DNA of 64,000 nucleotides, taken from contig NIVC01002677.1 in the NCBI GenBank assembly GCA_002269645.1, positions 86,133 through 150,132 on the forward strand, read 5' to 3'. The notes beneath the pieces are model-generated. The model was not told the DNA's origin and ran no database searches. It saw only the letters and a list, made by a program, of their open reading frames with translations. Shown one piece after another: positions 9,400 through 52,090 of this stretch; position 1 is the first letter of the stretch, and each line of letters starts with the position of its first letter. The DNA is from Macrostomum lignano (lineage: Eukaryota). The translations under genes were made by a program, and so were the position numbers.

Positions 9400-9620
9400 G
9401 ATGTCCATTGGGTTCTTATGTAAGATGCTGCTGGATTCTAAAGTGAGGTGTCCGTTGGATACTAAAGTGAGGTTTTTTGTTGGGTTCTCATGTGAGGAGT
9501 CCTTTGGATTCTTATGTGAGGTTTTTTGTTGGGTTCTCATGTGAGGAGTCCTTTGGATTCTTATGTGAGGTGTCCGTTGGAAGCTTGTAAGATGTCCGTT
9601 GGATACTAACGTGGGATGTA
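9400..9620. repeat. Degenerate ~24-bp minisatellite in LRR-Ig intron 2
   Basis: Units GTGAGGTGTCCGTTGGATACTAAA / GTGAGGAGTCCTTTGGATTCTTAT. Confidence 0.8.
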
Positions 9621-9773
9621 CCAAAGTACCTAATTTTGGTGCCTACTACATTCTAATGAGAGGTGTTGGTTAGATTCTAATAGGGTGTCCGATAGATACT
9701 AAATGTGTAATGTCCGATGGGTTCTAATTTTGATTTTCCTTAGATGTACCGTCTTTTCTAAATCTTTTCTCAC

Positions 9774-9996
9774 CTCCCTGACGACCGGCGGTCCGATCCC
9801 ATTGTCGGCGATGCAGCGGTAAAGGCCAGCGTCTGCTCTTGTCACATAGTCGATGTACAAAGAGCCATCCTGCAGCACTTGCACCCGCGACGAGCCCGGA
9901 CCCTCGGCTGCCTTCCGGGCTTCGTATTGAGTGTTCCAGTGCCACGGGTGCTCCGCGTGAAATGTGTTCGTGAAGGTGTCGGCTGGAGCGTGGTAC
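9774..9996 (-). CDS. LRR-Ig transmembrane protein, exon 2 (Ig I-set second half)
   Basis: ctccag|G TAC, GAG|gtgaga. RVQVLQDGSLYIDYVTRADAGLYRCIADNGIG carries the Ig D-x-G-x-Y-x-C motif. Confidence 0.9.
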
Positions 9997-10051
9997 CTGG
10001 AGTGGAAGTATGAGTAGGGAGGCAAAGAGTGAGACGGTTTTTCACTTGTAG

Positions 10052-10597
10052 GGAAAGGGAGTGAGGTGGGACAGGGAGTGAAATGGGACAGGGAGTGAAA
10101 TGGGGGACAGGGAGTGAGACAGGGAGTGAGATGAGGGAGAGGGAGTGAGGTGGGGACAGGGAATGAGGTGGGGACAGGGAGTGAGGTGGGGACAGGGAGT
10201 GAGGTGGGGACAGGGAGTGAGGTGGGGACAGGGAGTGAGGTGGGGACAGGGAGTGAGGTGGGGACAGGGAGTGAGGTGGGGACAGGGAGTGAGGTGGGGA
10301 CAGGGAGTGAGGTGGGGACAGGGAGTGAGGTGGGAACAGGGAGTGAGGTGGGGACAGGGAGTGAGACAGGGAGTGAGATGAGGGAGAGGGAGTGAGGTGG
10401 GGACAGGGAATGAGGTGGAGACAGGGAGTGAGGTGGGGGACAGGGAGTGAGGTGGGACAGGGAGTGAGGTGGGGGACAGGGAGTGGGGTGGAATGGGGAG
10501 TGAGGTGGGGACAGGGAGTGAGGTGGGACAGGGAGTGAGGTGGGGGACAGGGAGTGGGGTGGGGGACAGGGAGTGGGGTGGAATGGGGAGTGAGGTG
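10052..10597. repeat. 18-bp G-rich minisatellite (GGGAGTGAGGTGGGGACA)n
   Basis: About 28 units with variants, ending ~55 nt from the exon 2 acceptor. Confidence 0.95.
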
Positions 10598-11799
10598 AGA
10601 CACGCATGGAGTGAACAAGAAAGTGCAGTTTCAATAAAAAAGAAGCCACTTTTTCCTTACTTTTCACTCAGAAGCGGAAGCAAACGAAGGAAGGCATACA
10701 TAATATTGTAGTGTAAATTGGAAAAAGCCATGAAAGTGCTTATGAGTAGTGAAATAGCTTAGTGTGAGGCAACTTCCGCCCCCCCCCCGCTGAGCAGCAG
10801 TGGAGAACGAGGAAGTAGATTGTGTGAGCAGTTCAAACTGGCCAGCTCAGAGTTGAACAGCTGTCGCCGTTCTTGCCACAGCCTTCCTTTCCCCTAAACC
10901 GTCGGATTACCATAATCGGGCATGCTTGCGGCCCTACGTGTGTAGAGCGTGGGTTGGCTGTATTGGATTTGGATGGGGCATGGACTGCTAAATCCCTAGA
11001 ACCTGGACTAGAAGTTGAGTCTGAGTCCGTTCAAAAGTCCATGAGGGTCCAATAAAAGCATGTCCACCGCTATTCTCAGCGATATCCAGGCGAAGCCGTG
11101 TCCCCTAGAGGCCTCTCCCTCCCTTTCTGCATTTCCCTTGTTGGCCACCGGACCGAAACACAGTAATCTAATCATGTGGTCAGCAGCAGAGACAGAGAGG
11201 ACCAGAAGAGCCGAGAGACAGAGAGGTATCCGCAGAATCGATTGCTTCAACAAACGCAGAAGAAGAGAAGAGAAGCCGAGGCTGCTGAGCACGATCGATC
11301 GGTGTTTTGCTATAAAACAGGAATCTCTATCCAACCCCAGCTAACCCCGCCGTGCTTATGTGCATTGCCTCAGCGTTTAAACAAATTTTAAAGGGCTATT
11401 TAGTGTGGAGATAGCGGGAGGGATGCATCCCGTCCCCTGCATCCGGGTGCAGAGACCGGCCGCCCAAGGACAACTCGCTCAAGGACTTTTACAACTCTCA
11501 GTCTAAATTTTTTTAGCTAGGAATAAAAAAAATTAGATGGCGCTAAAGCTACTGAACGCACTCTCCAATTGTTGGGCACTAAAAGTGCTGTATTTTTGGA
11601 TATTTTAGAAAATGCGGGTAATTAGAGCTCCCCGTAATGTAGGGATACATATTATACCTTTTGCATATGCTGAAGCCCCTACTTAGGACAATAGGTGGGG
11701 TGTATGGTCCAAAACGAGTATATTTATACGACCTTTAATTAGTGGAGGTTGAGTGCCAATAAGAAAAGGAGGGTTGTACTTGTAGTGTGCGACTAAGGA

Positions 11800-11945
11800 A
11801 AGAGAGATGGGGAGAGAGGGTATGGGAAGAGAGATGGAGAAAGAGGGTGTGGGAAGAGAGATGGGGAGAGAGGGTGTGGGAAGAGAGATGGGGAGAGAGG
11901 GTATGGGAAGAGCGATGGGAGAGGGTGTGTGGGAAGAGAGATGTT
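11800..11945. repeat. 27-bp purine-rich tandem repeat (GAGAGATGGGGAGAGAGGGTGTGGGAA)x5
   Basis: Visible tandem units. Confidence 0.85.
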
Positions 11946-12496: not shown

Positions 12497-13135
12497 ATCT
12501 GGCGGAGATGGATTCTCAAAAATGACACCAGATTCTCAAAAATGGCACCCGATTCTCTAAAATGACACCAGATACTCCAAGATGACACCCGATTCTCCAA
12601 AATGACCCAAATTTTCAAAAATGACATCAGATTCTCAAAAATGGCACCAGATTCTCCAAAAATGGCACCAGATTCTCCAAAAATGGCACCAGATTCTCAA
12701 AAGTGGCACCAGATTCTCAAAAATGGCACCAGATTCTCCAAAAATGGCACCAGATTCTCAAAAGTGGCACCAGATTCTCAAAAATGGCACCAGATTCTCC
12801 AAAAATGGCACCAGATTCTCAAAAATGGCACCCGATTCTCTAAAATGACACCAGATACTCCAAAATGACACCCGATTCTCCAAAATGACCCAAATTCTCA
12901 AAAATGACATCAGATTCTCAAAAATGGCACCAGATTCTCCAAAAATGGCACCAGATTCTCAAAAGTGGCACCAGATTCTCAAAAATGGCACCAGATTCTC
13001 CAAAAATGGCACCAGATTCTCCAAAATGGCACCCGAATCTACAAAATGACACCAGATTCTAAAAAAATGGCATCAGCTTCTCAAAGATGAGGCCAGACTA
13101 TCCAAAATGGCACCGGGCACTCCAAAATGGCACTG
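12497..13135. repeat. 20/21-bp minisatellite (AAAATGGCACCAGATTCTCC/A)n
   Basis: About 30 units, starting ~65 nt inside the LRR-Ig intron 1 donor. Confidence 0.95.
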
Positions 13136-13199
13136 GACTCTCGAATTGTTTAACATTTATTAAACATTTTAATGAAAGCAGCGCAGAGGTTGAACAAAC

Positions 13200-14369
13200 C
13201 TGTTCCGAAGCGGCGGCCTGTAGGTGACGTTGCTTCCCCGCCCGGTCACCCAGGTCACGTGGGCGGGCGGCTCGGCGGCCACCCGACACAGCAAGCGGGC
13301 GGAATCGCCGACTCCGTAGCTGGCCCGGCCGCTGAAGTTCAAAAATCTCGGCGCCCGGCAGCCCAGCTCGGCCGTGAAGTTCAAACCGGACAGGCGGCGG
13401 CCGCTGAGCCGAGGCGGCCCGGCGCATTTGGCGTCCGGTCCCAGCTCGACGGCGGCCAGCCAGGCGAGGCCGCAATGGCTGCAGTTCCAGGCGCCGCCGC
13501 CGTCGACACGGATGCTCAGGCGGCGCAGCGCGGGTCCCCAGCTCCAGCCGGCCAGTTTTGGACAGCGCCGGAAGCGCAGCTGGCGCAGCCGCGGCAGCTG
13601 GTTCAACGAGTCGACAAATTCGTACGTCACTTCGGTCAGGTTGGGCGAATCAACGAACTCCAGCCGGCGCAGGTTCGGGTGGCCCGCCAGGCCGCTGGCG
13701 GACAGCCGGCCGCTGGCCGAGAGGCGCAGCTCGCGCAGCCCGGACCCCCGCGGTGGCGTTGGCCAGCCGCTCCAGCTGGGCGTCCAGATCGGCCAGCGGA
13801 CTGCCGGACAGATCGAGCCGGTTCAGGTCAGTCAGGACGACGCTGGAGTTGACGGTCAGGCCGGTCAGGCCGCAGGCGGAGACGTTGAGCTGGGCGAGGT
13901 TCGGGAGCGCGGCCGAGAGGCTCGTCAGCGGAAATTCGCCAACGCCACCGTCGCCGCCTTCGCAGGACAAGTCGAGCTCCGCGAGGCCCGGCCAGAGCTG
14001 ACCGCGCCGGCTAATCAGTTTGGCGAGGTCGACAGCCGGGCGTCGAAAGCTGCCGCCGAGGCGCAGTCGGCGAAGCTGGCCCCGGCGCCAGTCGGATCCG
14101 AGGTCGGCGAGTTCGGCCAGGAGGTCGACGGGCGGCGACAACGATGTTGGCGCGGCCAACGTGGCGGAGAGGCTGGCCCAGGGCGGCTGGCGGATTGCGG
14201 CCAGGCGGTTCCAGTCCGCAACCGAGAGGTCGGGACAGTCGACTTCGCTCAGGCCGTCAGCTGAGCGGCAGGTGCATCGGGCCGGACACGCCGGCTGCGG
14301 CATCGGCCGAGCGGCGGCCAGAGCGATCACCGAGAGCAGCAGCAGCTGCAGCAGCGGCGATGACGACAT
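13200..14369 (-). CDS. LRR-Ig transmembrane protein, exon 1 (signal peptide, LRRNT, LRRs, LRRCT, start of Ig); 1 frameshift at 13745-13749
   Basis: MSSSPLLQLLLLSVIALAAA signal, CPARCTC LRRNT, LxxLxL repeats, WNCSHCGLAWL..CAGP..LGC LRRCT, LLCRVAAEPPAHVTW Ig; donor AG|gtttg at 13199. Two ORFs (13650-14369, 13169-13630) join across a G5 run. Confidence 0.85.
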
Positions 14370-19088: not shown

Positions 19089-20061
19089 CAAGGGGTGTCC
19101 AAAAAGTAGTGATACTTTTAACCATAGTTCTGGTTCTATAGCTTCCTGTGATTTAAAATTTTATGAACTGATAGCAGAAAATCTCTTCTACAAACTGCTT
19201 TTTGAATTTTTAAAATTGATACCAGAGAACAAAAGTTATACCCACGAAAATAACAGTACCTATACCATAGAGTTACACAAATTGTATGAAAATTTATAAT
19301 AGTTGACTTCTGCACTCATTCATTAAGAAGGCATTGATAAATGTCTTGTTTAAGCAATACAATTGCAAAATGATGCTCATTGTGACTGACTGGAATTTGT
19401 CTATGGATGGAATCATGCGCAGAAAAATAAAGCATTAAATTCATTACTTTACTTGCAAACAGAGGAGCTTGCATTTTGCGATTTGTTCATGATTTTATTG
19501 CCCATACTCGACAACACATGGATGTGCACTCAGTTGTTGCTCAGCAAAGTACCATCTTCACTCTTTGGGGTGCTGGCCATAGTGCCTCAGAAATTCACGC
19601 AAAACTTTGCTCTGCGCATGGATCCTCTGCGGTCAGCAAAATGACAGTTTATCAATGGATTGAGCAGTTAAGCAAGGGAAGGACTGACTTGGCAGATCAG
19701 CATCAGACAGGGCAGCCATACGTTCATCAACCTGATGTACTAGCAGACTCCATTCTGGATCTTCTTGACCTTTAGAGAGATCGCTGACACTCTGATAGGT
19801 TAGACATGCTGAAATCAACAATTCATTGAAGCTTACTCGGCATGTATCTTGTGAAGCTCAGCCTATAATTTGTGTAACTCTATGGTACAGGTACTGTTAC
19901 TTTCATGAGTATAACTTTTGTTCTCTGGTATCAATTTTAAAAATTCAAAAAGCAGTCTGTAGAAGAGATTTTCTGCTATCAGTTCATAAAATTTTAAATC
20001 ACAGGAAGCTATAGAACAAGAGCTATGGTTAAAAGTATCACTACTTTTTGGACACCCCTCA
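19089..20061 (+). mobile_element. Non-autonomous, internally deleted Tc1/mariner (mariner-type) DNA transposon
   Basis: 195-bp TIRs (19089-19283 and 19867-20061, about 9 mismatches), TA on both sides. Internal ORF 19476-19775 QSTIFTLWGAGHSASEIHAKLCSAHGSSAVSKMTVYQWIEQLSKGRTDLAD..TGQP is the mariner HTH; no DD34D domain. Confidence 0.92.
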
Positions 20062-20706
20062 TATAATGCTCTGAATAAATAGATAATCATTATTTATAAT
20101 ATTGACTTTTTTAATTTTGACTATAACAAAGATTACATCATAACTACCTTTTTGTTTATCATTAGTAACAAGTTGATTGGCTAAATTGTAACTTTTACTT
20201 TTATTTGAATTGCATAATCACTATAGTCACAAGATTTTCCTTGGTATATGGCAGTAAAATATGAGCCACACCTATATTGGATCCTAAAAGATATAAACCT
20301 ATATTTTAAGTCAAATAGAATTAAAATTTTGTATACCAGTATGAGTTTAAATCTATGATTGGCTATCATTTTAGACATTATTTATACAATTACTATATTA
20401 TTATTATCCATTAATGTAATTTAAATAATAAAAATGTTTCGATTTCGACAGTGCATAAAGCATAAGGTTTAATTATAAGCTAACAAATAATGACTGCATT
20501 TTTGTGAAGCCATGATTTAATCTAGTAATACATAAAAAATGAATGACCTTTCCATTGATTATATTTTTCGGCTTGATCAGATAGTTTTTTATTTATTTCA
20601 TGGCATCCCACTTTGCTGCATCCCACCAGAAAGTGAAGAAGTAGATCCAGCATCCTTGAAATCTCAGCAAACCAGGCGGGCGGTCTCGCTTTTGCCCGAG
20701 GAGTTG

Positions 20707-21726
20707 ATGGACTCATCTGAGCAGCTGCAGCAGGCTGGGGACGAGCTTGACGATCGCAGCGACTCGCTGCCGCAGCCACCGCTGGAGGCGCCGACGCGTC
20801 CAGGACGAGCAGCAGCAGCCGACGAAGATGAAGACAAGCAGCTGGCCCTGCTTAAGACCATCGACGTGGAGGACATCCACACGGAGGTGGCCGGCAAGAC
20901 CAGCCGCGGCGCCATCCGGCGCATCGCCCGCGCCTCCAGCTGCGAGGCGCCAACGCCGGCTGCCCTGGCAGCAGCAGCAGAGGCCGCATCCGAAGATGAT
21001 GAAGATGACGAAGACAAAGAAGCCAATGATGAGCTGGGGACGGCAACGGCGGCGGCTGAGACTGACAAGCCGTCAGCATCCGACCCGGGCTCGAACTCGA
21101 GACCAGCCGCTGCTGTTGCCGAAGACAGCATCGCAGCCGGCGTGACGGCGCTGCTGCTTAACGAAGCTGAGCAGCAGCAGCAGCAAAAGCAACAGCAGGA
21201 TGATGTAGAGGAGACACTGACAGCAGAATGGAGAACAGCTGATCGGCACGTGTTTGTCATGAGCCGTTCAGGCAAGCCGATCTTTAGTCGGCATGGCAAC
21301 GAAGAGAAGCTGGTGACCCACATGGGCGTCATGACCGCCCTGGTGTCAGTAGTTGAGGACTCAGACGATCAGGTGCATTGGTTCGAATCCGCTGATCGCA
21401 GATTCGTATTCCTAGCCAAGGAGTTCCTCATTCTCGTGTGCATCTGCCGGTCGGCCGAGTCGCCTACTCAACTGCTGCTCCAGCTCAACTATTTATACAA
21501 TCAGATCCTCAGCCTGCTCACCTTCACTGTGCTCAAGCGGGCATTTCGCAAGTCAAATTACGATCTGCGCCATTTGCTACCAGATGCGGACAGGTTCTTG
21601 ACCGGCCTGCTGCAGTTCATGGAGCGGGACATCGGGCCCCTGCTGGGCGCAGTCCAGTGCCTGCCACTGCCCAAGTCTACCAGAGACGCTGTCGGCGATG
21701 CCATCTGCTCTGGAGCTCGGGTTAAG
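20707..21726 (+). CDS. MON1: Vacuolar fusion protein MON1 (Rab7 GEF subunit), exon 1
   Basis: Acidic N-terminus, then W...HVFVMSRSGKPIFSRHGNEEKL...MGVMTALVS, QLNYLYNQILSLLT, NYDLRHLL longin domain; AAG|gtgaaa donor. Start codon inferred. Confidence 0.95.
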
Positions 21727-21757
21727 GTGAAAATCTGGATTTTTTTAAGGAGATGGG

Positions 21758-21953
21758 AATAATAATTGAATTGAATACCGCTGCCCTGATTGCCCTGATT
21801 GATTGTCGCCACACCTGCAGCTGGGTGAACTGAAGCAATGCAGAGTTAAGTGGTCTTCTTGCTTAAGGACACAAATTGTTCCAGTGGGATCCGGAATCGA
21901 ACCCCCGACCTTCACGTCGTTAGTCCGACGCTCTGACCACTGGGCTACAAACC
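21758..21953 (-). mobile_element. tRNA-derived CORE-like SINE (family B) in MON1 intron 1
   Basis: Minus strand: A-box TAGCCCAGTGG, B-box GGTTCGATTCC, CORE-like GTGTCCTTAAGCAAG..CACTTAACTCTGCATTGCTTCAGTTCACCCAGCTG, ending CAATTATTAT. Confidence 0.8.
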
Positions 21954-23049
21954 TTAGACACATTAGACACATTATAGAGTAATCCAATAGAGAATTAAGC
22001 AACTCCAAGCCAATCAAAATACAAGTATTGAAAATTTTTTGTTTTTTTAAAAATCAATTTTCTTTATTTGAGGAATGAGATCGCGAAAATGCCGCCTTTC
22101 GATACATATCGTCATCGTGTTTGTTTCTTTAGTAGAAGGACCTACTGCATGCACTTTGAAATTTTGATTAAAATTTCAATGTGGAGATAGTTTTCCTTTG
22201 TACTTTAATGACTAATTAGTGTTAGTGGCAATTCAATATGATCAACTTTAAAATAGGGTCCGCGTGCTTCCAGTTTTCATTGCGGTATTTTCTCATTTTT
22301 CTGTACTGCACTGCCAAAGATTGCAAATTAAAATAAAATAAAATTTTACTATTAGTAGCATATAAAGTATATTTGCTTTATTTTTTATTATAGTCCATAT
22401 ATTACCCTATATATTTATGCTAAGAGTAAAACAGTTAATAGAATTTCATTATTGCTAATTTCGTGAATGCAATATTTCGCTATTTCTACTGTAAGTAAAG
22501 TATCTAGAAGTTGCAAAACAATTAACAAAAAAACAAGTGGTTCGACAAGCTCAGTTCATGGGCTGTTACTAAAATTTGTTATTGTCATTAAGAAATCATA
22601 AAAAATATATTCATTAATTCGTTAACTCGCTTCCAGAATCGTCGCAATCCGGTAAGTATTAGGTGATTGTTTGTTTGTTTGTTTAATCTCTTTTTGTGTC
22701 TTCTGTGTGCTTCTGGTTCAATTTTAACATTCTATCATAAATGCGCTTCATTGGTGGTTTGTTTTACAGTAGCTGCTATTGTTTACCCACTTTGTTGTGC
22801 CTAGTTTTTATTTATTTGGTTTAATAGTTAAAATATCCTGCTCACCAGTACTAATAATTAATAATTTAGTAGTTGAAAAACTGTTCTATACGTCTAGCGA
22901 AGATAATTTTAAGTGGTTTTTAAGACTTTCAGTTTTGGGGAATTCTAGCCTTTTTAATTGCTCACAAATTGGCTCTCCCTTGCTGTTATAACTTTAGAAT
23001 ATTGGTAACAATCTCACAATTAGACAATTATTCAAGAAGACGATGGGAA

Positions 23050-23672
23050 TCTCTATGCTAGAGAGTGAGAATCTCAGGGTGAGGCACAGTGAGCAGGTGA
23101 CTGAGGTGAGACAGTCAGAATTTCAGGTTAAGACAGTGAGAATCTCACAATAAAATTATGAGAATCTAAAAAATAGACCGTCGGAATATCTAAGCTAGAG
23201 AGTGAGAATCTCAGGGTGAGACATTGAAAATCTCAGGGCGAGGTAGTGAAAATCTCAGGGCGAGGCAGTGAGAATCTCGGTGAGACAAGGAAAATCTCAC
23301 AATGAGATAATCAGAATCTCCAGAGTAGCCAGTTGGGATCTCTAAGCTAAAAGAGTGAGAATCTCAGGGTGAGACATTGAAAATCTCAGGGCGAGGCAGT
23401 GAGAACCTCAGGGTGAGACAAGGAGAATCTCAGGGCGAGGCAGTGAGAACCTCAGGGTGAGACAAGGAGAATCTCAGGGCGAGGCAATGAGAACCTCAGG
23501 GTAAGACAAGGAGAATCTCAGGGTGAGACAAGGAGAATCTCAGGGCAAGGCATGAAGAATCTCAGGGTGAGACACTAAGAATCTCACAAAGAGATAATGA
23601 GAGTCTCCAGAGTCGACAGTTTTAATCTCTAAGCTAGAAGAGTGAGATCTCAGGGTGAGACACTGAGAATCT
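23050..23672. repeat. ~21-bp minisatellite (GAGAATCTCAGGGTGAGACA..)n in MON1 intron 1
   Basis: Degenerate tandem units ending ~20 nt before the acceptor at 23690. Confidence 0.9.
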
Positions 23673-23690
23673 AGCCCCCATCACTCGCAG

Positions 23691-23981
23691 GATCTGGTGT
23701 TCGGCATCCTGCTGAGCGGCACCAAGCTGGTGAGCCTGGTGCACATGAAGCGGCAGTACCTGCACCCGTTAGACATGCATTTGATTATCAATTTGATTAA
23801 CTGCACCGAGTCCTTCAAGACCAGTCAGGCCTGGACTCCGATTTGTCTGCCGAAGTTCGACGCCAGCGGCAACCTGTACGCCTACGTGTGCTTTCTGGAC
23901 GAGGAGCTCTGCTTGGTGCTGCTCACTGTCGACGGCAACAGCTTTGACGCTTTGGCCGAGGCCAAGAATAAAATACTTGAG
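23691..23981 (+). CDS. MON1: MON1 exon 2
   Basis: cgcag|GAT..GAG|gtaggt. DLVFGILL..LHPLDMHLIINLI..SFKTSQAWTPICLPKFDASG; 291 nt, phase 0. Confidence 0.95.
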
Positions 23982-24002
23982 GTAGGTACACTTCGGTTGG
24001 GC

Positions 24003-24598
24003 TTAGTCAATGGGATCTGTGCATTACTTGGGATGTTTTAGTCCATGGGATCAGTGCAATCAGTGGGGAGTTTTAGTCAATGGGGTCTGTACAATCAGTG
24101 GGGAAGTTTTAGTCCATGGGGTCTGTGCAATCAGCGGGGCAGTTTTAGTCAATGGGATCTGTGCTATCTGTGGGGAAGTTTTAGTCAATGGGATCAGTGA
24201 AATCAGCGGGGCAGTTTTAGTCAATGGGATCTGTGCAATCAGTGGGGAAGTTTTAGTCAATGGGATCTGTGCAATCAGTGGGGAAGTTTTAGTCCATGGG
24301 ATCAGTGCAATCAGCGGGGCAGTTTTAGTCAATGGGATCTGTGCAATCAGTGGGGAAGTTTTAGTCAATGGGATCTGTGCAATCAGTGGGGAAGTTTTAG
24401 TCAATGGGATCTGTGCAATCAGTGGGGAAGTTTTAGTCCATGGGATCAGTGCAATCAGCGGGGCAGTTTTAGTCAATGGGATCTGTGCTATCTGTGGGGA
24501 AGTTTTAGTCAATGGGATCTGTGCAATCAGTGGGGAAGTTTTAGTCAATGGGATCTGTGCTATCTGTGGGGATTTTTTTGTCAATGGGATCTGTGCAA
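24003..24598. repeat. 36-bp minisatellite filling MON1 intron 2
   Basis: (GTTTTAGTCAATGGGATCTGTGCAATCAGTGGGGAA)x~16. Confidence 0.95.
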
Positions 24599-24727
24599 GA
24601 CCAATCGGATTAAACTTTGAATTGGAAACTGCTAAATTAGTCGTTAAAGTTTCCAACCTACTAACAGTACTAACAGTAGTGTTTTGGCTTGTCAGTAGCA
24701 AATTTTATTTCACTCCTTCGCACGCAG

Positions 24728-25009
24728 AAGCTGCAGAAGGCCAATTGTCTGGCCCAGATTCGCGAGAGCGCCGTTGCCGGCCAGTGGACCCTGGCGCAGA
24801 CTGGGGCGGAGGAGGTGCGCCATTTCGTGTACAAAATCAAGCTGGCTGGCCAGTACTTCTCGCCGCAGATGGGCGACCCGTTTGGCCAGCCTGAGGACCA
24901 GCAGCGCGTCATGGCGCTTTACCAGCGGATGCACGCCCTGCTGCATCGGCGGACCAGGCCGCTTAAGCTGGTGTATCACACCAACCAGCTGGCATCCGTG
25001 ATGGGCTGG
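24728..25009 (+). CDS. MON1: MON1 exon 3
   Basis: cacgcag|AAG..TGG|gtgagc. VRHFVYK..QY..P..., ALYQRMH, PLKLVY..VMGW; 282 nt. Confidence 0.95.
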
Positions 25010-25044
25010 GTGAGCCTGTTTGACATCTCACTAACAAATAATAC

Positions 25045-25265
25045 ACTTCTGACATCCCGCTGACAGATACCCCTGACATCCTGCTGTCAGATACCCCTGA
25101 CAACCCTTTTACAGGTACTCCTGACATCCCTCTGACATACTCCTGACATCCCTCTGACATACTCCTGACATCCTGCTCACAGATTCCCCTGACATCCCGC
25201 TGACATACCCCTGACAACCCGCTGTCAGATACCCCTGACATCACGCTGACATCCCGCTGACAGAT
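25045..25265. repeat. Degenerate (CTGACATCCC-like) tandem repeat filling MON1 intron 3
   Basis: Recurrent CTGACATCCC / CTGACAGATACCCC units. Confidence 0.75.
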
Positions 25266-25329
25266 TCCCATAGCAGCTGATGGCGGCACTCCGCTAAGCA
25301 CTCAACATCCCATCAATTCTCGTTGCCAG

Positions 25330-25974: not shown

Positions 25975-26310
25975 AAGGGTAGTGAAGTCGGGTGGGGGGG
26001 GGGGGTTTGCCGGGGTAGTAAAGTGGAGGGTAGGAAAGGGGGGTTGGCCGGGCAGTAAAGTGGGGGTTGGCTGGGGTAGAAAGTGGAGAGGGGTTGGCCG
26101 GTGTAGGAAAGGGGGTTGGCCGGGGTAGTAAAGTTGAGAGTAGGAAAGGGGGGTTGGCCTTGGTATGAAAAGGGGGTTGGCCGGGGGATTGGCCGGGGTA
26201 GGAAAGTGGGGGATTGGCCGGGGTAGGAAAATGCGGGGGTTGGCTGGGGTAGGAAAGGGGTGTTATACGGGGTAATAAAGTGGGGGGTTTGGCCGGGGTA
26301 GTAAAAAGTT
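25975..26310. repeat. G-rich ~22-bp minisatellite (GGGGGTTGGCCGGGGTAGGAAA)n
   Basis: Degenerate tandem units. Confidence 0.85.
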
Positions 26311-27424: not shown

Positions 27425-28050
27425 AGTGGGGGTTTGGGTCAGGTTGGGAAAGTTTGGGGGGTTGGCCAGGGTATGAAAGTGGTGGGTTTACCAGGGTAAG
27501 AAAGTGTGGGGGTTGGCCGGAGTAAAAAAGTGTGGGGGTTCGGCCGGGATAAGAAAAGGTGGGGGGTCGGCCGGGGTAATAAAATGAGGGGGGTCGGCTG
27601 GGGTAATAAAATGGGGGGTTGGCCGGGGTAATAAAATGGGGGGTCGGCCGGGGTAAGAAAATGAGGGGGTCGGCCGGGATAATAAAATGGGGAGTTGGCC
27701 GGGGTAATAAAATGGGGGGTTTGGGTCAGGTTGGGAAAGTTTGGGGGTTGGCCAGGGTATGAAAGTGGTGGGTTGGCCGGGGTAAAAAAGTGTGGGGGTT
27801 CGGCCGGGGTAAGAAAATGTGGGGGTCGGCCGAGGTAATAAAATGGGGGGTCGGCCGGGGTAAGAAAATGAGGGGGGGGTCGGCCGGGGTAATAAAATGG
27901 GGGGTTGGCCGGGGTAAGAAAATGGGGGGTCGGCCGGGGTAAGAAAATGTGGGGGTCGGCCGAGGTAATAAAATGAGGGGGGTCGGCCGGGGTAATAAAA
28001 TGGGAGTTGGCCTGGGTAAGAAAGTGAATTGGTGGTTGGTCGGGGTAAGA
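27425..28050. repeat. G-rich ~23-bp minisatellite (GGGGGTCGGCCGGGGTAATAAAAT)n with ~290-bp higher-order duplication
   Basis: Same core as the 25975 array; the block starting GGGTTTGGGTCAGGTTGGGAAAG occurs at ~27429 and ~27717. Confidence 0.9.
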
Positions 28051-28942: not shown

Positions 28943-29170
28943 GTAAGCACTGCGTCATCCTTCAGTAATCACTGCGTCATCCTTCAGTAATCACTGCATC
29001 ATCCTCAAGTAAGCACTGCGCCATCCTTCAGTAATCACTGCATCATTCTCAAGTAAGCACTGCGTCATCCTTCAGTAATCACTGCATCATCCTCAAGTAA
29101 GCACTGCGTCATCCTTCAGTAAGAATTGAGTCATCCTTCAGTAAGCACTGCGTCATCATCCAGTAAGCAA
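28943..29170. repeat. 22-bp minisatellite (GTAAGCACTGCGTCATCCTTCA)x~10
   Basis: Visible tandem units. Confidence 0.9.
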
Positions 29171-34461: not shown

Positions 34462-35606
34462 GACTGCGCTAGTGACAGATTGTGCTAGCGACAGTTTACA
34501 GACTGCATTAGTGACAGTTTACAGACTGCGCTAGTGACAGTTTACAGACTGTGCTAAGTGACAGATTGTGCTAGCGACAGTTTACAGACTGTGCTAGTGA
34601 CAGATTGTGCTAGCGACAGTTTACAGACTGCATTAGTGATAGTTTACAGACTGTGCTAGTGACAGATTGTGCTAGCGACAGTTTACAGACTGCATTAGTG
34701 ACAGTTTACAGACTGCGCTAGTGACAGTTTACAGACTGTGCTAAGTGACAGATTGTGCTAGCGACAGTTTACAGACTGTGCTAGTGACAGATTGTGCTAG
34801 CGACAGTTTACAGACTGCATTAGTGATAGTTTACAGACTGTGCTAGTGACAGATTGTGCTAGCGACAGTTTACAGACTGCATTAGTGATAGTTTACAGAC
34901 TGTGCTAGTGACAGTTTACAGACTGCATTAGTGACAGTTTACAGACTGTGCTAGCGACAGTTTACAGACTGCATTAGTGACAGTTTACAGACTGCATTAG
35001 TGATAGTTTACAGACTGTGCTAGTGACAGTTTACAGACTGCATTAGTGATAGTTTACAGACTGTGCTAGTGACAGTTTACAGACTGCATTAGTGACAGTT
35101 TACAGACTGCATTAGTGACAGTTTACACACTGTGCTAGTGACAGTTTACAGACTGTGCTAGCGACAGTTTACAGACTGCATTAGTGACAGTTTACAGACT
35201 GTGCTAGTGACAGTTTACAGACTGCATTAGTGATAGTTTACAGACTGTGCTAGTGACAGTTTACAGACTGCATTAGTGACAGTTTACAGACTGCATTAGT
35301 GACAGTTTACACACTGTGCTAGTGACAGTTTACAGACTGTGCTAGCGACAGTTTACAGACTGCATTAGTGACAGTTTACAGACTGCGCTAGCGACAGTTT
35401 ACAGACTGCATTAGTGACAGTTTACAGACTGTGCTAGCGACAGTTTAGAGACTGCATTAGCGACAGTTTACAGACTGCATTAGTGACAGTTTACAGACTG
35501 CGCTAGGGACAGTTTACAGACTGCATTCGTGACAGATTACAGACTGTGCTAGTGACAGTTTACAGACTGTGCTAGTGACAGCTTACAGACTGCGCTAGCG
35601 ACAGTT
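34462..35606 (-). repeat. Same 23-bp satellite in inverted orientation, right arm, ~1.15 kb
   Basis: (GTGCTAGTGACAGTTTACAGACT)n is the reverse complement of the left-arm unit. Confidence 0.97.
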
Positions 35607-36625: not shown

Positions 36626-36895
36626 TAATAATTGATTTCACCTGCCCCAATTGGGACAGATGTGCAACCGACAGCTCAGCCGCAGCTATTGCGCGGCGCA
36701 TCTGAAGTCTGCGTACGGCCGCTCAGTCCAAGAACTTTGGGGTCGCCACGCACACCCTCAATTACCCCAGCTAATGCTGGCACCCATTTTACAGCTGGGT
36801 GTCTTGCTCAAGGACACAAATTGTTCCGAGTGGGTCGAGACTCGAACCCCCGACCTTTCAGTCGTCAGTGCGACGCTCTGACCACTGCGGTAGGC
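36626..36895 (-). mobile_element. tRNA-derived CORE-like SINE (family B), longer copy
   Basis: Minus strand: CGCAGTGGTCAGAGCGTC..GGGGGTTCGAGTCTC head, GTGTCCTTGAGCAAGACAC..CCAGCTGTAAAATGGG core, tail ending CAATTATTAT like the 21758 copy. Confidence 0.8.
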
Positions 36896-41835: not shown

Positions 41836-41901
41836 ATTTCAAAAGCCAGAGTCAAAGCAAAGCAAGGTCCTCAGTCGCAGTCCAAGAGTTATCCCAAAGT
41901 C

Positions 41902-43627: not shown

Positions 43628-44365
43628 CGCCCCCCATCGGGTAATGATAATCGCCCAATCAGATAATGAGAATCGCCCCACAGATAATGAGAATCGCCCC
43701 ATCAGATAATGAGAATCGCCCCCATCGGATAATGAGAATCGCCCTATCAGATAATGAGAATCGCCCCATCAGATGATGAGAATCGCCCTAGCAGATCATG
43801 AGAATCGCCCTAGCAGATCATGAGAATCGCCCCCATCGGATAATGAGAATCGCCCTATCAGATAATGAGAATCGCCCCATCAGATAATGAGAATCGCCCC
43901 ATCAGATAGTGAGAATCGCCCCATCAGATAGTGAGAATCGCCCCATCAGATAATGAGAATCGCCCCATCAGATAATGAGAATCGCCCCATCAGATAATGA
44001 GAATCGCCCCATCCGATAATGAGAATCGCCCCATCAGATAATGAGAATCGCCCCATCAGATAATGAGAATCGCCCCATCCGATAATGAGAATCGCCCCAT
44101 TAGATGATGAGAATCGCCCCATCAGATAACGAGAATCGCCCCATCAGATAATGAGAATCGCCCCATCAGATAATGAGAATCGCCCCATCTGATAATGAGA
44201 ATCGCCCCATCAGATAATGAGAATCGCCCCCATCGGATAATGAGAATCGCCCTATCAGATAGTGAGAATCGCCCCATCAGATAATGAGAATCGCCCCATC
44301 AGATAGTGAGAATTGCCCCATTAGATGATGAGAATCGCCCCATCAGATAATGAGAATCGCCCCAA
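43628..44365. repeat. 22-bp minisatellite (GATAATGAGAATCGCCCCATCA)n
   Basis: About 33 units starting ~320 nt upstream of the GPCR ATG. Confidence 0.96.
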
Positions 44366-44884
44366 ACAGTGTTAGAGCTACATCAGGAAATCTGCATCAC
44401 TTAAAAAAATTAACTAATTGCACAAAAAAGCAGATTTGTTTCCCCAGCCGGGCAGCATCCCCTGCAGGCATTCCCATTTAGCAAGCAGCAGCTCAAATCC
44501 CACACGCTACGCAACTTCCTGAGTTGTTCATCACTAATGCGAGCTTTCTATTTCAATATTCCAGCTCATTACGGGATTCCGTTCTCACTGCGGTGCCCAT
44601 GACTTTCCCAGCCTCCCATGTACTTTGCAAGATTCTCCCCATCGCCATCTGCTTTCTCTCGAACTTTTTCGCATTACGAGGATGGGGGGCGCTGGGAGAT
44701 TTTGAGATAGTGACAGTGGCGGATTTCACGCCGCCGCCTTGAGGATTGAATTTGGTTTTATAATAATCCCCTTCATCTCTTGAGGCTCGAAATCTCCATA
44801 GCGAGATGAGGGACACTGGGGAGTTCACGACTAAAATAATTTCACCAATTTTCTATGCCTGCAGTGAGATGAATAATAGCTCAC

Positions 44885-45245
44885 ACTGACTCATAGTGAC
44901 TCATAGTGACTCAGAGTGACTCATAGTGACTCGTAGTGACTCGTAGTAACTCATAGTGACTCCTAGTGACTCATAGTGACTCATAGTGACTCATAGCGAC
45001 TCATAGTGACTCATAGTGACTCAAAGTGACTCATAGTGACTCATAGTAACTCATAGTGACTCATAGTAACTCATAGTAACTCATAGTAACTCATAGTGAC
45101 TCATAGTGACTCATAGTGACTCATAGTGACTCATAGTGACTCGCAGTAGCTCATAGTGACTCAGTGACTCATAGTAACTCATAGTGACTCATAGTGACTC
45201 ATAGTGATTCATAGTGACTCATAGTGATTCATAGTGACTCAATGC
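44885..45245. repeat. 10-bp tandem repeat (TAGTGACTCA)n
   Basis: About 35 units. Confidence 0.96.
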
Positions 45246-45269
45246 GACTCATTTTGACTCATTGTAAAC

Positions 45270-47075
45270 CGCCATCTCATAGAATCGCCCCACCATCTCA
45301 AAGAATCGCCCCCGCCATCTCAAAGAATCGCCCCGCCAACTCAAAGAATCGCCCCGCCATCTCAAAGAATCGCCCCCACCATCTCAAAGAATCGCCCCCG
45401 CCATCTCAAAGAATCGCCCCGCCATCTCAAAGAATCGCCCCGCCATCTCAAAAAATCGCCCCGCCAACTCAAAGAATCGCCCCGCCATCTCAAAGAATCG
45501 CCCCGCCATCTCAAAGAATCGCCCCGCCAACTCAAAGAATCGCCCACGCCATCTCGAAGAATCGCCCCGCCATCTCGAAGAATCGCCCCGCCATCTCAAA
45601 GAATCGCCCTGCCATCTCAATGAATCGCCCCGCCATCTCAAAGAATCGCCCCGCCATCTCAAAGAATCGCCCCGCCAACTCAAAGAATCGCCCCGCCATT
45701 TCAAAGAATCGCCCCCGCCAACTCAAAGAAACGCTCCGACATCTCAAAGAATCGCCCCGCCATCTCAAAAAATCGCCCCGCCAACTCAAAGAATCGCCCC
45801 GCCATCTCAAAGAATCGCCCCGCCATCTCAAAGAATCGCCCCGCCATCTCAAAAAATCGCCCCCGCCATCTCAAAGAATCGCCCCGCCAACTCAAAGAAT
45901 CGCCCACGCCATCTCGAAGAATCGCCCCGCCATCTCAAAGAATCGCCCCGCCAACTCAAAGAATCGCCCACGCCATCTCAAAGAATCGCCCCGCCATCTC
46001 GAAGAATCGCCCCGCCATCTCAAAGAATCGCCCTGCCATCTCAAAGAATCGCCCCGCCATCTCAAAAAAAAGCTCCGCCATCTCAAAGAATCGCCCCGCC
46101 ATCTCAAAAAATCGCCCCGCCATCTCAAAGAATCGCCCCCGCTGTCTCAAAGAATCGCCCCGCCAACTCAAAGAATCGCCCCGCCATCTCAAAGAATCGC
46201 CCCCACCATCTCAAAGAATCGTCCCGCCATCTCGAAGAATCGCCCCGCCATCTCAAAGAATCGCCCCGCCATCTCAAAGAATCGCCCCCACCATCTCAAA
46301 GAATCGTCCCGCCATCTCGAAGAATCGCCCCGCCATCTCAAAGAATCGCCCCCGCTGTCTCAAAGAATCGCCCCCGCAACTCGAAGAATCGCCCCCGCTA
46401 TCTCAAAGAATCGCCCCCGCTATCTCAAAGAATCGCCCCGCCATCTCAAAGAATCGCCCCCGCCAACTCAAAGAATCGCCCCCGCCATCTCAAAGAATCG
46501 CCCCGCCATCTCAAAGAATCGCCCCGCCATCTCAAAGAATCGCCCCCGCCAACTCAAAGAATCGCCCCCGCCATCTCAAAGAATCGCCCCGCTATCTCAA
46601 AGAATCGCCCTCGCCATCTCAAAGAATCGCCCCCGCTATCTCAAAGAATCGCCCTCGCCATCTCAAAGAATCGCCCTCGCCATCTCAAAGAATCGCCCTC
46701 GCCATCTCAAAGAATCGCCCCCGCCATCTCAAAGAATCGCCCCCGCTGTCTCAAAGAATCGCCCCCGCCAACTCAAAGAATCGCCCCCGCTGTCTCAAAG
46801 AATCGCCCCGCCATCTCAAAGAATCGCCCCCGCCATCTCAAAGAATCGCCCCCGCTGTCTCAAAGAATCGCCCCCGCCATCTCAAAGAATCGCCCCGCCA
46901 TCTCAAAGAATCGCCCCGCCAACTCAAAGAATCGCCCCCGCTATCTCAAAGAATCGCCCCCGCTATCTCAAAGAATCGCCCTCGCCAACTCAAAGAATCG
47001 CCCCGCCAACTCAAAGAATCGCCCCGCCATCTCAAAGAATCGCCCCGCCAACTCAAAGAATCGCCCATCTCAGGG
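45270..47075. repeat. 21/22-bp minisatellite (GCCATCTCAAAGAATCGCCCC[C])n, ~1.8 kb
   Basis: About 84 units; explains the 621-aa low-complexity ORF. Confidence 0.97.
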
Positions 47076-47537
47076 CAAATCGCTATTGAAAGTCACTGGG
47101 AAATGATTCATTCGCAAAACCTTTCTCGGATAGGAATAAACATTTTTCATCTAACATTCTTTCGACTCACGGAGCTTCCCACACTCTCACTCAGCTCCTC
47201 TCTTCCCCCTGCTAGTAGCAATTGTGCAGAATAATTTCATCACTGCTTTCATAAGCATAATTTCTGCATAAATTTGTCGCAGAAAAACAACGAAAATCTG
47301 ATTTATCGTTTGAAATACAGCTATCTTTGTGCTTTCTGTCTCGCTTTTGTGACCCTCGCAATTAGTGGGGCCGCTCAGCCTCCTAGCACCATCATATCAT
47401 TTACGAGCTATATTCTCTCGCTTCAATCTGATCTGCTGGTCCTAATTCTGCGGCTAGGTGTTTCACGGGGGAGACACAATACAGAGCACTGAACAAAATT
47501 GACACTTTTATTGATTCTTGCTGCAACTGTTCACCGA

Positions 47538-48365
47538 TACTCATCTTCAGGAATCATTTCTCCATCCTCATTCTCTCGATAATCATCTTCAGGAATCATT
47601 TCTCCATCCTCACTCTCTCGATAATCATCTTCAGGAATCATTTCTCCATCCTTACTCTCTCGATAATCATCTTCAGGAATCATTTCTCCATCCTCACTCT
47701 CTCGATAATCATCTTCAGGAATCATTTCTCCATCCTTACTCTCTCGATAATCATCTTCAGGAATCATTTCTCCATCCTCACTCTCTTGATAATCATCTTC
47801 AGGAATCATTTCTCCATCCTCACTCTCTTGATAATCATCTTCAGGAATCATTTCTCCATCCTCACTCTCTCGATAATCATCTTCCCGAATCATTTCTCCA
47901 TCCTCACTCTCTCGATAATCATCTTCCCGAATCATTTCTCTATCCTCACTCTCTTGATAATCATCTTCCCAAATCATTTCTCCATCCTCACTCTCTTGAT
48001 AATCATCTTCCCAAATCATTTCTCCATCCTCACTCTCTTGATAATCATCTTCAGGAATCATTTCTCCATCCTCATTCTCTCGATAATCATCTTCCCGAAT
48101 CATTTCCCCATCCTCACTCTCTTGATAATCATCTTCCCGAATAATTTTCCCATCCACACTCTCTCGATAATCATCTTCAGGAATTCATTTCTCCATCCTC
48201 CCATCCTCTCTCTCGATGATTATCTTCCCGAATCATTTCCACATCCTCACTCTCTCAATAATCATCTTCAGGAATCATTTCCCTATCCTCACTCTTCAAA
48301 TAATCATCTTCAGGAATCATTTTCCCATCCTCACTCTCTTGATAATCATCTTAAGGAATCATTTC
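47538..48365. repeat. 42-bp minisatellite (GATAATCATCTTCAGGAATCATTTCTCCATCCTCACTCTCTC)n
   Basis: About 19 units. Confidence 0.95.
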
Positions 48366-49054: not shown

Positions 49055-49320
49055 TTAGCCTGATGTGCCAGCGGCCCAGGCTCGATTCCAAATGCAGTCC
49101 ACATTAATTTTGGGGCCAAATTGGAATCTCGGCTTGGCTCTGCTCGTGCAATTAGCGCCATTGAAGGCCAACCTCTAAGGCACAGTGAAGTGTACATGTC
49201 TGACGGTTAGACAGTCAGGGCCGCTGTACACCCTGAGTGAGCGTGTGTGTGAGTGCGTGCCTGCATGTGCTCAGGAGTCAGCGGTGGTTGTGGGACGATG
49301 TCGCGACCTTTCACAGTCTC
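49055..49320 (+). mobile_element. SINE family A copy
   Basis: B-box-like GGCTCGATTCC, body GGCCAACCTCTAAGGCACAG..GTCAGGGCCGCTGTACACCCTG..GCATGTGCTCAGGAGTCAGCGG. Confidence 0.7.
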
Positions 49321-50112
49321 AGAGGACAACAAGCGGTTGCATCCTTTACCTCTCATGACTGCGGACTCACCTTGTTGAAGAAGAAGCGTCTCGTTCGAGC
49401 TGCCATGCAGGCTGGGCTCAGGAGCTTAAAAGACCGTATAGGACGATGAGGAACGGAGAGAGACTGGGGGGTGAGGAAACGGGCGAGAATTGATCGCCGC
49501 TGCACTACCCCAGGAAGCAGCCGGCAGCTGAAATGATTCAGAAGAAACACGCAGGGCTGCTTAGAAAAGCGGAAAAAGAGGAAACACGGAACACTTTCCC
49601 AGCTTCACACCGCTTCATCCATGTGCGTGCGGACCTGGCTGAGTTCAATATGTTGACTGGTGGGGGGGGGGTGCAGTAAAAGTTTGTAAAGCAAGCCAGA
49701 CACCGAGTGCTAGATTTTTAATTATAGAAGAATAACAACTTTTTACTTTGCCCTTACCCCCCACCGCGCCGACATCCGGTCGAGATGGAGGACGGCAGCT
49801 GGGCCAAGATTATTCCCGGCTGAGGAACTTTTTCTTCTTCCGCCGAAACAAGTTGAAAGCTGGGAAATTTGAACTGGCTATTCCCCCAGGAACCTGGAAC
49901 CAGGGTCTGGAGGGGATTTAATCCTCATTTTTATGTCGCTTTTCAGTTCCCTCACGACATTTGTTCTTCCATAAATTTCTAATAAATTCTGCTTGGTGAA
50001 ATCATACTCTTTAAAGTTGGTCTTGACTAAACTTCTGTAGTAAACTTTACATGTAGGTACCATGTAAGTACCCATGTAACCTTGTAGGTACCCATGTAGG
50101 TACCAGTTATCA

Positions 50113-50160
50113 AGCAGCAGAGCAGCTCAGCGGTAAACCCCCTGGTTGGATTCCGTGAGC
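50113..50160 (+). mobile_element. SINE family A head fragment
   Basis: GCAGAGCAGCTCAGCGGTA..CCCCTGGTTGGATTCCGTG matches the 4936 head with an internal deletion. Confidence 0.5.
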
Positions 50161-50459
50161 GTGAAGATATGGGAAATTTTACTTTTTTCTACAAAATCAG
50201 ACCACGAATGTAAAATACCTCGTTTGGACAGAATACAAGTTATGACAATCAATACGCAACCGCAGGTTTTAGAAAATATTCTCGACTTTAACTGACCCAG
50301 GCACCCATCAAACTTGTTGATAAAATGCGAAACACGTAAAACTGCAGGGAGCGAAAGGCCGCCACTTCTATGAAGTTTGGACTTTTATGGCGTTTGGGTT
50401 GCGGCTCCGCGGAGGCAGGCGATTCATGAAATTGCAAGATTTTCACCAATCAGTTGGTT

Positions 50460-51545
50460 AGGAATAGAATGGATTGCTAGTCTAGCCTACATCAATGATG
50501 AAGGAATAGAATGGATTGCTAGTCTAGCCTACATCAATGATGAAGGAATAGAATGGATTGCTAGTCTAGCCTACATCAATGATGAAGGAATAGAATGGAT
50601 TGCTAGTCTAGCCTACATCAATGATGAAGGAATAGAATGGATTGCTAGTCTAGCCTAAATCAATTATGAAGGAATAGAATGGATTGCTAGTCTAGCCTAC
50701 ATCAATGATGAAGGAATAGAATGGATTGCTAGTCTAGCCTACATCAATGATGAAGGAATAGAATGGATTGCTAGTCTAGGCTACATCAATGATGAAGGAA
50801 TAGAATGGATTGCTAATCTAGCCTACATCAATGATGAAGGAATAGAATGGATTGCTAGTCTAGCCTACATCAATGATGAAGGAATAGAATGGATTGCTAG
50901 TCTAGGCTACATCAATGATGAAGGAATAGAATGGATTGCTAATCTAGCCTACATCAATGATGAAGGAATAGAATGGATTGCTAGTCTAGCCTAAATCAAT
51001 TATGAAGGAATAGAATGGATTGCTAGTCTAGCCTACATCAATGATGAAGGAATAGAATGGATTGCTAGTCTAGCCTAAATCAATTATGAAGGAATAGAAT
51101 GGATTGCTAGTCTAGCCTACATCAATGATGAAGGAATAGAATGGATTGCTAGTCTAGCCTAAATCAATTATGAAGGAATAGAATGGATTGCTAGTCTAGC
51201 CTACATCAATGATGAAGGAATGGAATGGATTGCTAGTCTAGGCTACATCAATGATGAAGGAATAGAATGGATTGCTAGTCTAGCCTACATCAATGATGAA
51301 GGAATAGAATGGATTGCTAATCTAGCCTGCATCAATTATGAAGGAATACAATGGATTGCTAGTCTAGCCTACATCAATGATGAAGGAATAGAATGGATTG
51401 CTAATCTAGCCTACATCAATGATGAAGGAATAGAATGGATTGCTAATCTAGCCTACATCAGTGAAGGAATAGAATGGATTGCTAATCTAGTCTGCATCAG
51501 TGATGAAGGAATAGAATGGATTGCTAATCTAGCTTACATCAGTTA
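50460..51545. repeat. 42-bp minisatellite (GGAATAGAATGGATTGCTAGTCTAGCCTACATCAATGATGAA)n
   Basis: About 26 units. Confidence 0.96.
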
Positions 51546-51826
51546 AGAAACAGAAATAATGACGAAATAAAAAAATGGAACATCTTTTTATGTGTTTTGC
51601 AATTATTTGAGCTCAAAGATCGATTTTGTCAGGTTAATAATCAATATTTCTACTACCAGTAGAGATTGAAGGGTTTTTTTCTTTGAATATGCGTATAATT
51701 GATTGAAATTTCAAGGGTCCCTCATGACTCCGCTGGCGCTTTTGTGAAGGAAAGTAAAAATTTTCCTTCATTGACCACCCATTGACCGGACCGGATCATT
51801 GATCGGATTAACCATCAATCAGTCCA

Positions 51827-52090
51827 CATCTGGCCATGAGAATCACTCCTTATCTGGCCATGAGAATCACTCCTTATCTGGCCATGAGAATCACTCCTTA
51901 TCTGGCCATGAGAATCACTCCTCATCTGGCCATGAGAATCACTCCTCATCTGGCCATGAGAATCACTCCTCATCTGGCCATGAGAATCACTCCTCATCTG
52001 GCCATGAGAATCACTCCTCATCTGGCCATGAGAATCACTCCTCATCTGGCCATGAGAATCACTCCTCATCTGGCCATGAGAATCACTCTT
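51827..52090. repeat. 24-bp minisatellite (TCTGGCCATGAGAATCACTCCTCA)x~11
   Basis: Near-perfect units. Confidence 0.96.

Follow-up and report, generated by a model that had tools for sequence, protein, structure and literature searches.

Six minisatellite arrays of a 64-kb stretch of Macrostomum lignano DNA share a short AGAATC core

We analyzed the minisatellites of a 64,000-nucleotide stretch of Macrostomum lignano DNA (contig NIVC01002677.1, positions 86,133–150,132 of the forward strand; below, the window), in which an earlier note, made from the letters alone, had pointed out a short core recurring in otherwise different arrays. AGAATC was found in 6 of 24 consensus units, and a perfect 8-mer, TGAGAATC, in 4 of 24. 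This sharing is not a product of chance, provided that the arrays are independent of one another. Tentatively, and with less than even confidence, we regard the core-bearing arrays as relatives: the arrays of this repeat-rich region would spawn one another and pass on a block of the parent unit.

The window is nuclear animal DNA, and Rfam and tRNA scans revealed no RNA genes in it. Tandem repeats make up 17,442 of its 64,000 bases (27%) and sort into about 24 distinct minisatellite arrays, with units of 10–42 bp, and four microsatellites. The arrays carrying the core are the following:

9402–9728, minus strand: 24-bp minisatellite, reverse-complement consensus TTAGAATCCAACGGACACCTCACA; exact AGAATC in 4 of about 14 units
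12497–13133, minus strand: 20/41-bp minisatellite (array 12497, also named 12511), reverse-complement unit TGAGAATCTGGTGCCATTTT alternating with GGAGAATC... units
23050–23672, plus strand: 22-bp minisatellite TGAGAATCTCAGGGTGAGACAA with a higher-order repeat of about 150 bp, in intron 1 of the MON1 gene
43628–44364, plus strand: 22-bp minisatellite TGAGAATCGCCCCATCAGATAA (array 43628, also named 43632); 33 copies, 92% matches
45269–47066, plus strand: 21-bp minisatellite AAAGAATCGCCCCGCCATCTC; 84 copies
51817–52088, plus strand: 24-bp minisatellite TGAGAATCACTCCTCATCTGGCCA; 11 copies, 98% matches

The window contains 81 copies of the heptamer GAGAATC, whereas dinucleotide shuffles gave 10.0 ± 3.4 (at most 19), and 75 of the 81 copies are located in four arrays, at 12511–13021 (minus strand), 23067–23671 (plus), 43668–44358 (plus), and 51838–52084 (plus). 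AGAATC, with 174 copies, brings in the array at 45269–47066 and part of that at 9402–9728. GAGAATC was present in 22 of about 31 units of array 12511 (the whole TGAGAATC in 11) and in 11 of about 28 units of array 23050; the core was present in 31 of about 33 units of array 43628 and in all 11 units of array 51817. In array 45269, 77 of 84 units have AGAATC and none has GAGAATC; array 9402 is the weakest carrier of the core. The core is on the minus strand in arrays 9402 and 12511 and on the plus strand in the 23.0-, 43.6-, 45.3-, and 51.8-kb arrays. These counts, together with the consensus units, confirm the earlier statement that AGAATC runs through six arrays and GAGAATC through four, and all unit strings quoted with it are present in the window. 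The heptamer is indeed common to the four arrays, but the block that they actually share, as seen in their consensus units, is the 8-mer TGAGAATC. Two looser attributions fared differently: GAATC, reported for an array at 47538 (47535 here), is there as GGAATC and not as AGAATC, and AATC, reported for array 28943, is missing from its consensus and occurs in only 4 variant units.

Because the motif had been picked after the data were seen, the statistic used was the number of arrays having the most widely shared k-mer, computed on 24 distinct consensus units taken as circular and on both strands. Against shuffled units, the P values were 0.0007 for the 6-mer (6 arrays), 0.016 for the 7-mer (4 arrays), and 0.001 for the 8-mer (4 arrays); against pseudo-units taken from the window’s own non-array DNA they were 0.006, 0.033, and 0.0013, respectively. 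The earlier estimate of about a 0.3% chance per unit was arithmetically right but ignored both the post hoc choice of the motif and the relatedness of arrays. When only arrays 43632 and 45269 were merged, P was 0.022 (6-mer), 0.013 (7-mer), and 0.0008 (8-mer); with array 51817 merged into them, it was 0.34, 0.41, and 0.04; and with the whole 43.6–52 kb cluster merged, 0.24, 0.31, and 0.033. The overall significance therefore hinges on the independence of array 51817 from array 43632.

The CCAT said to lie often near the core did not stand up when every dyad of two 4-mers and a gap was scanned without bias: the best one is found in 4 arrays (P = 0.76). In arrays 12511, 23050, and 9402, GAATC-N(0–8)-CATC was found at the last core; outside arrays it had no further occurrence. 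The core with CCAT/CATC was rejected as a two-part motif and regarded as suggestive only, given this dyad value and P = 0.09–0.25 for each of the array-edge alignments.

Copying of arrays within the region is evident independently of the core. Arrays 26028 and 27428 have a unit in common (longest common substring of 17 nt), and arrays 30656 and 34475 are built of one 23-bp unit, oppositely oriented, and have a 74-nt exact match on opposite strands:

30656–33995 (3.3 kb) and 34475–35606 (1.1 kb), opposite orientations: inverted array pair with the 23-bp unit CAGTCTGTAAACTGTCACTAGCA, separated by a gap of about 480 bp

This inversion could show the route by which the 9.4- and 12.5-kb arrays got the core on the other strand. 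The two members are very large inverted arrays with cruciform or fold-back potential. As in a family by descent, homogeneity within arrays exceeds similarity between them: the match rate inside arrays is 69–98%, and the top consensus identity between arrays is about 68% (43632 vs. 23203).

Units alignable beyond the block were found for arrays 43632 and 45269, weakly for arrays 28943, 47535, and 51817, and not for arrays 9402, 12511, and 23050. The same-strand arrays 43632 and 45269, which are separated by 900 bp, have in common the 13-nt string AGAATCGCCCCAC, the third-longest among 325 array pairs, and their remainders are still similar when the core is held fixed and the rest shuffled (P = 0.007 and 0.083; P = 0.038 in the other test). 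The two are clearly related beyond the core, and it is only for this pair that we consider family by descent proven. Four further features, most of them near this pair, bear on the question:

44887–45262, plus strand: 10-bp array (TGACTCATAG)n, about 38 tandem copies, abutting array 45269
44627–44653, plus strand: solitary unit-like sequence AGATTCTCCCCATCGCCATCTGC between arrays 43628 and 44887
47535–48365, plus strand: 42-bp array that has GGAATC (GAATC only) and is weakly similar to the units of arrays 28943 and 51817
28943–29191, plus strand: 22-bp array with AATC in variant units (CAGTAATCACTGCGTCATCC)

The passage from array 44887 to array 45269 is a local example of one array grading into another: CTCATAG is common to array 44887 and to the first unit of array 45269, at their junction. 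Four consecutive same-strand arrays within 8.5 kb carry GAATC. Weak links were found among arrays 28943, 47535, and 51817 (P = 0.03–0.10 in the core-fixed remainder test; z = 5.7), and array 28943 is a possible distant member, being similar to 47535 (P = 0.03–0.07) and 51817 (P = 0.10). The solitary sequence at 44627–44653 has GAGAATC on the minus strand and then, on the plus strand, CCCCATC/GCCATCT like the neighboring units, a weak resemblance (P = 0.03–0.09). The last core of array 23050 is followed by TAGCCCCCATCA, comparable with GCCCCATCA in the 43632 unit, and in array 12511, CATCTCCGCCAGAT comes after the last core; at 44631, between arrays, AGATTCTCCCCATCGCCATCTG occurs alone. Each of these array-edge and 44631 resemblances to the 43.6–52 kb units has P = 0.09–0.25, and a Fisher combination of the edge resemblances gives about 0.02–0.03 for segments that were picked by eye after seeing the data.

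If the core-bearing arrays are relatives, arrays of the region would have been copied, inverted, and re-phased. A new array would be founded on a fragment of an older unit, a contiguous block including (T)GAGAATC, plus adjacent sequence, and would then be homogenised separately by unequal exchange or slippage. Since it would start from only part of the old unit together with neighboring sequence, a contiguous block alone would be inherited, which matches the observed pattern; the shared block would therefore be inherited. We infer that the 12.5-, 23-, 51.8-, and 9.4-kb arrays belong to the same lineage, with a partial unit carried over at each birth. Nothing points to function: there is no enrichment of the core outside arrays and no clear extra conservation of it, and 18 of 24 arrays do without it; these points we count for relatedness.

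Several results weigh against such a lineage. The remainders of the 9402, 12511, and 23050 units have no similarity to those of other core arrays (P = 0.15–0.99), the cross-cluster sum of remainder similarity has P = 0.27, and the remainders of arrays 51817 and 43632 do not match significantly (P = 0.21–0.40). A perfect 8-mer beside unrelated remainders is unlike uniform divergence and needs the additional assumption of partial units. A unit fragment would also have to be moved over 10–30 kb, and the flanks of the arrays share nothing.

The same 8-mer would be accounted for if (T)GAGAATC were a site where arrays arise or persist, which could be a preferred point of breakage, nicking, or slippage or be bound by a lineage-specific DNA-binding protein. 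We consider this somewhat unlikely, and likewise the amplification, along with the core, of unrelated sequence beside a lone core copy that it would entail. The block is perfect and contiguous in four arrays with otherwise unrelated units (P of about 0.001 against two nulls, and 0.0008 once the proven related pair is merged). Arrays also end close to it, 0, 1, 6, 4, and 4 nt past the last core with units of 20–24 nt, and 3 of 5 arrays open with a degenerate core; array 12511, read in core orientation, stops exactly at the core (GAGAATC|CATCTCC), and array 23050 stops one base past it. Such ends are expected of a core that served as the short direct repeat when the first unit was duplicated; the phase measure was chosen after seeing the data, and two of its arrays are related. 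The core is centered on the near-palindrome GA-A-TC, extended in the unit of array 23050 to the 11-nt palindrome TGAGAaTCTCA, and conserved palindromes at unit junctions are proposed hotspots in tandem-repeat MITEs (miniature inverted-repeat transposable elements) of clams (PMC3879986). On the other hand, the motif is absent from 18 of the 24 arrays, and its solitary sites are at or below the expected frequency: the 46.6 kb outside arrays contain six GAGAATC sites, about the base-composition expectation, and 14 AGAATC sites, below prediction, with no common context. Conservation at the core positions hardly exceeds that of the other unit positions, and in array 12511 it is slightly lower. Significance drops to P = 0.03–0.04 (8-mer) and 0.24–0.34 (6-mer) if array 51817 is kin of array 43632, and the proposed partner motif CCAT/CATC is not significant. 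That (T)GAGAATC is a lineage-specific minisatellite-initiating site, on which a predicted protein (a nuclease, recombination-hotspot specifier, or chromatin factor) acts, is in our view unlikely; equally doubtful is that repair or slippage at the motif repeatedly amplified its neighbors, which would explain the perfect 8-mer in unrelated 20–24-bp units and the arrays ending and starting at the motif. Such a site would be a counterpart of the human core that is not G-rich, in an animal with introns consisting largely of arrays of this sort. What survives of the lineage-specific core proposed in the earlier note is the sharing beyond chance among four arrays with remainders not detectably related; a bound motif, a nick or recombination signal, and a transposon remnant received no support from the tests possible in the window.

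In a reading by coincidence, only arrays 43632 and 45269, perhaps with 51817, would be kin, and the 6–8-mer in the 9.4-, 12.5-, and 23-kb arrays would be there by chance. We regard this as improbable, and as no more probable that the match was noticed because many windows and k-mers had been looked through. It is consistent with the loss of significance for the 6- and 7-mers when the 43.6–52 kb arrays are collapsed to one or when only 43632, 45269, and 51817 are merged, with the frequency of shared strings in general (exact strings of 8–11 nt are common between any two arrays, and strings of at least 8 nt are shared by 127 of 325 array pairs, all variant units counted), and with the presence of the 6-mer in only 4 of about 14 units of array 9402. 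Against it, the 8-mer has P = 0.0008–0.0013 in three test variants if array 51817 is independent of array 43632, which the remainder test does not contradict, and still about 0.03–0.04 after full collapse. A metagenome scan for GAGAATC at a 19–24-nt period gave at least 120 unrelated stretches from very varied sources, and among the matches listed none was related to the window beyond microsatellites; these stretches indicate only that such arrays are not rare in nature, a point counted in favor of coincidence. Two eukaryotic metagenome contigs from sister samples, Ga0105052_10108233 (L083, positions 1–170) and Ga0105055_10277866 (L118, positions 560–800), carry different GAGAATC minisatellites, GAGAATCCGTGTCCGTTGGAGTCT and GAGAATCTGTTCTCTCTGCAGAT, and share a SINE-like element (SINE, short interspersed element). 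The L083 unit has the 11-mer TGTCCGTTGGA and a 24-bp period in common with the 9402 unit, in a different register relative to the core. Kinship of these contigs with the window was rejected, since the window has no copy of the SINE-like element and the arrays do not align core to core. A literature search for GAGAATC together with minisatellite returned nothing relevant.

It is very improbable that a single MITE- or Helitron-like mobile element, with copies that include the core, supplied the arrays as its internal tandem repeats. Bivalves and insects have repeat-bearing elements of this kind (PMC3879986), GATGGG...CCCCATC brackets array 23050, and the window contains, at 19091–20059, an element with terminal inverted repeats of 196 bp and a length of about 970 bp. 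However, self-BLASTN of the window with arrays masked, which answers the earlier suggestion to search the flanks for a common transposable element, revealed no similarity between the flanks of any two core arrays. It gave only the 196-bp inverted-repeat pair (19.1/19.9 kb) and two short dispersed repeats (5034/30462/49162 and 21857/36802), none of them adjoining core arrays; target-site duplications or shared terminal repeats were not seen either. The transposon-borne reading is thus largely refuted for this window. A coding origin was also rejected for core arrays with 20- and 22-bp periods, which cannot be coding because the period is not a multiple of 3. The open frame of array 45269 is due solely to a unit in which no plus-strand frame has a stop codon. 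Among the arrays checked for coding, only the 42-bp array 47535 has a plausible peptide translation: its minus strand stays open for 208 codons as an acidic repeat of 14 residues (EDDYRESEDGEMIP), with 15 in-frame copies at 47531–48157 and a stop codon at the array edge. By its reading frame, this array may be a coding exon, made of repeats, of a gene that is not annotated and that would lie between those for the cadherin and the receptor described below.

If the block is merely inherited, the window would be a compact case of minisatellites spawning, inverting, and re-phasing within tens of kilobases, which would help repeat annotation and would not be surprising. Genome-wide enrichment of the core, if it proved true, would add a second example of a minisatellite core, with a composition that differs from that of the human core in not being G-rich. 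It would then offer a handle on array initiation in a genome in which a quarter of the sequence, and the greater part of some introns, consists of arrays. In either case, tests of k-mer sharing between arrays have to allow for relatedness; in this window, this choice alone shifts P from 0.001 to 0.03–0.34.

The genes and gene fragments of the window are the following:

20539–21726, 23691–23981, 24728–25009, and 25330 to about 25470, plus strand: modelled exons of MON1
54057–55862, minus strand: cadherin-repeat open reading frame (ORF) of 601 codons
about 41.9–43.35 kb, minus strand: rhodopsin-type seven-transmembrane (7TM) receptor
13169–13630, minus strand: LRRCT/Ig-like ORF
58481–59146, minus strand: FAM221 exon
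62485–63174, plus strand: M28 peptidase exon

Array 9402 is intronic in a minus-strand gene, with its end about 40 bp upstream of a 3′ splice site (...ccgacag|CTGGTGTTC); in arrays 9402 and 23050, the core is on the sense strand of the host genes, just upstream of 3′ splice sites. Array 12511 is directly downstream of the LRRCT/Ig-like ORF, array 43628 is upstream of the 7TM receptor gene, about 280 bp from the start of this opposite-strand gene, and the 45–52 kb arrays are placed between the cadherin and receptor genes. With placements so varied, the core arrays have no consistent relation to transcription.

The spliced MON1 protein has at most 50% identity to anything in a collection of 5.8 billion proteins, the best matches being from molluscs, a nemertean, and a brachiopod; a search with the raw MON1 exon ORF gave no match at E ≤ 1e-20. 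Intron 1 (21727–23690) closes with array 23050–23672, 18 bp before the exon 2 acceptor (23691). Of intron 2 (23982–24727, 746 bp), 80% is array 24003–24598, and 67% of intron 3 (25010–25329, 320 bp) is array 25049–25262. The element of about 970 bp, located about 480 bp upstream of the MON1 start codon, is bracketed by a 196-bp inverted repeat with 96% identity (19091–19286 and 19864–20059) and has ends of the form ...AAGGGGTGTCCAAAAAGTAGTGATAC; no target-site duplication was resolved, and by its structure it is probably a MITE or fold-back transposon. The two dispersed repeats (5034–5092, 30462–30552, and 49162–49263; 21857–21942 and 36802–36887) have 2–3 copies each of 50–93 bp with 83–94% identity, and are probably SINE or MITE fragments; one copy is located 100 bp upstream of array 30656.

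In the cadherin gene, the ORF ends at 54057, and a second minus-strand frame, open from at least 54099, adds about 146 codons (DGSELPDSYDYHDMNEF...; 53660–54100). Close to the 3′ end of the gene, this change of frame points to a frameshift, an assembly error, or a short intron. Each TGACTCATAG copy of array 44887, about 1.5 kb upstream of the 7TM receptor gene, includes TGACTCA, a perfect AP-1/TRE consensus. G-rich minisatellites are located at 10051–10597, 11800–11943, 26028–26305, and 27428–28025, and the dyad GGGA..GGGG, common to four arrays, is not significant.

Among known systems, the ‘mirage’ minisatellites of amphioxus, as described in a passage of PMC3087553 citing Canestro et al. 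2002, have units that span an exon–intron boundary. The likeness to them lies in minisatellites inside genes beside exons, which here make up most of MON1 introns 2 and 3 and stand directly before two acceptors. Unlike mirages, the arrays at 23050–23672, 24003–24598, and 25049–25262 are wholly intronic with respect to the boundaries at 21726, 23691, 23981, 24728, 25009, and 25330, lying 21–38 bp after donors and at least 18 bp before acceptors. A mirage origin through the 9-mer CTGGTGTTC, which is found in the exons downstream of arrays 9402 and 23050, and through ATCTGGTG, also in the 12511 unit, was rejected, as CTGGTGTTC is present in a third exon as well. CTGGTGTTC encodes Leu-Val-Phe in G/C-ending codons, seemingly favored in these exons, and its sharing is taken as a codon-driven coincidence.

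Tandem-repeat MITEs of bivalves and insects (DTC84, pearl/CvA) have a conserved segment or palindrome at the unit junction, a proposed copy-number hotspot (PMC3879986). The arrays of the window are likewise short, and they tend to end at the core (0–6 nt past it). Unlike those elements, they have no shared flanking modules, terminal inverted repeats, or target-site duplications, and their core is not clearly a region of reduced variability, its per-position identity being about that of the rest of the unit. The core repeats of tandem-repeat MITEs are also much longer than the 20–24-bp units found here. With satellite families of the ‘library’ model, the arrays share a within-array identity well above that between arrays, related neighbors, and duplicated and inverted arrays; unlike in such families, most pairs have only a 6–8-nt block in common, the rest of the unit being unalignable.

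Human hypervariable minisatellites, in the work of Jeffreys et al. in 1985, reportedly share the core GGGCAGGAXG. Loci of this type are associated with meiotic recombination, and their core is G-rich and chi-like, with an asymmetry of purines and pyrimidines between the strands. As in these, arrays with differing units and unit lengths share one short contiguous block, and this beyond chance, although the value weakens to P = 0.03–0.34 when neighbors are treated as kin. The core-bearing arrays are all within 43 kb, whereas the human loci are scattered genome-wide. TGAGAATC, in contrast to the Jeffreys core, is AT-rich (3 G/C of 8), has no G run and no G-rich strand, and is not chi-like. The 18-bp unit GGGACAGGGAGTGAGGTG (10051–10597) resembles the human core, GGAGGTGGGCAGGARG, more than the AGAATC arrays do. 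The pattern in the window behaves as a Jeffreys-type core family in its block sharing but fails the compositional feature of that family.

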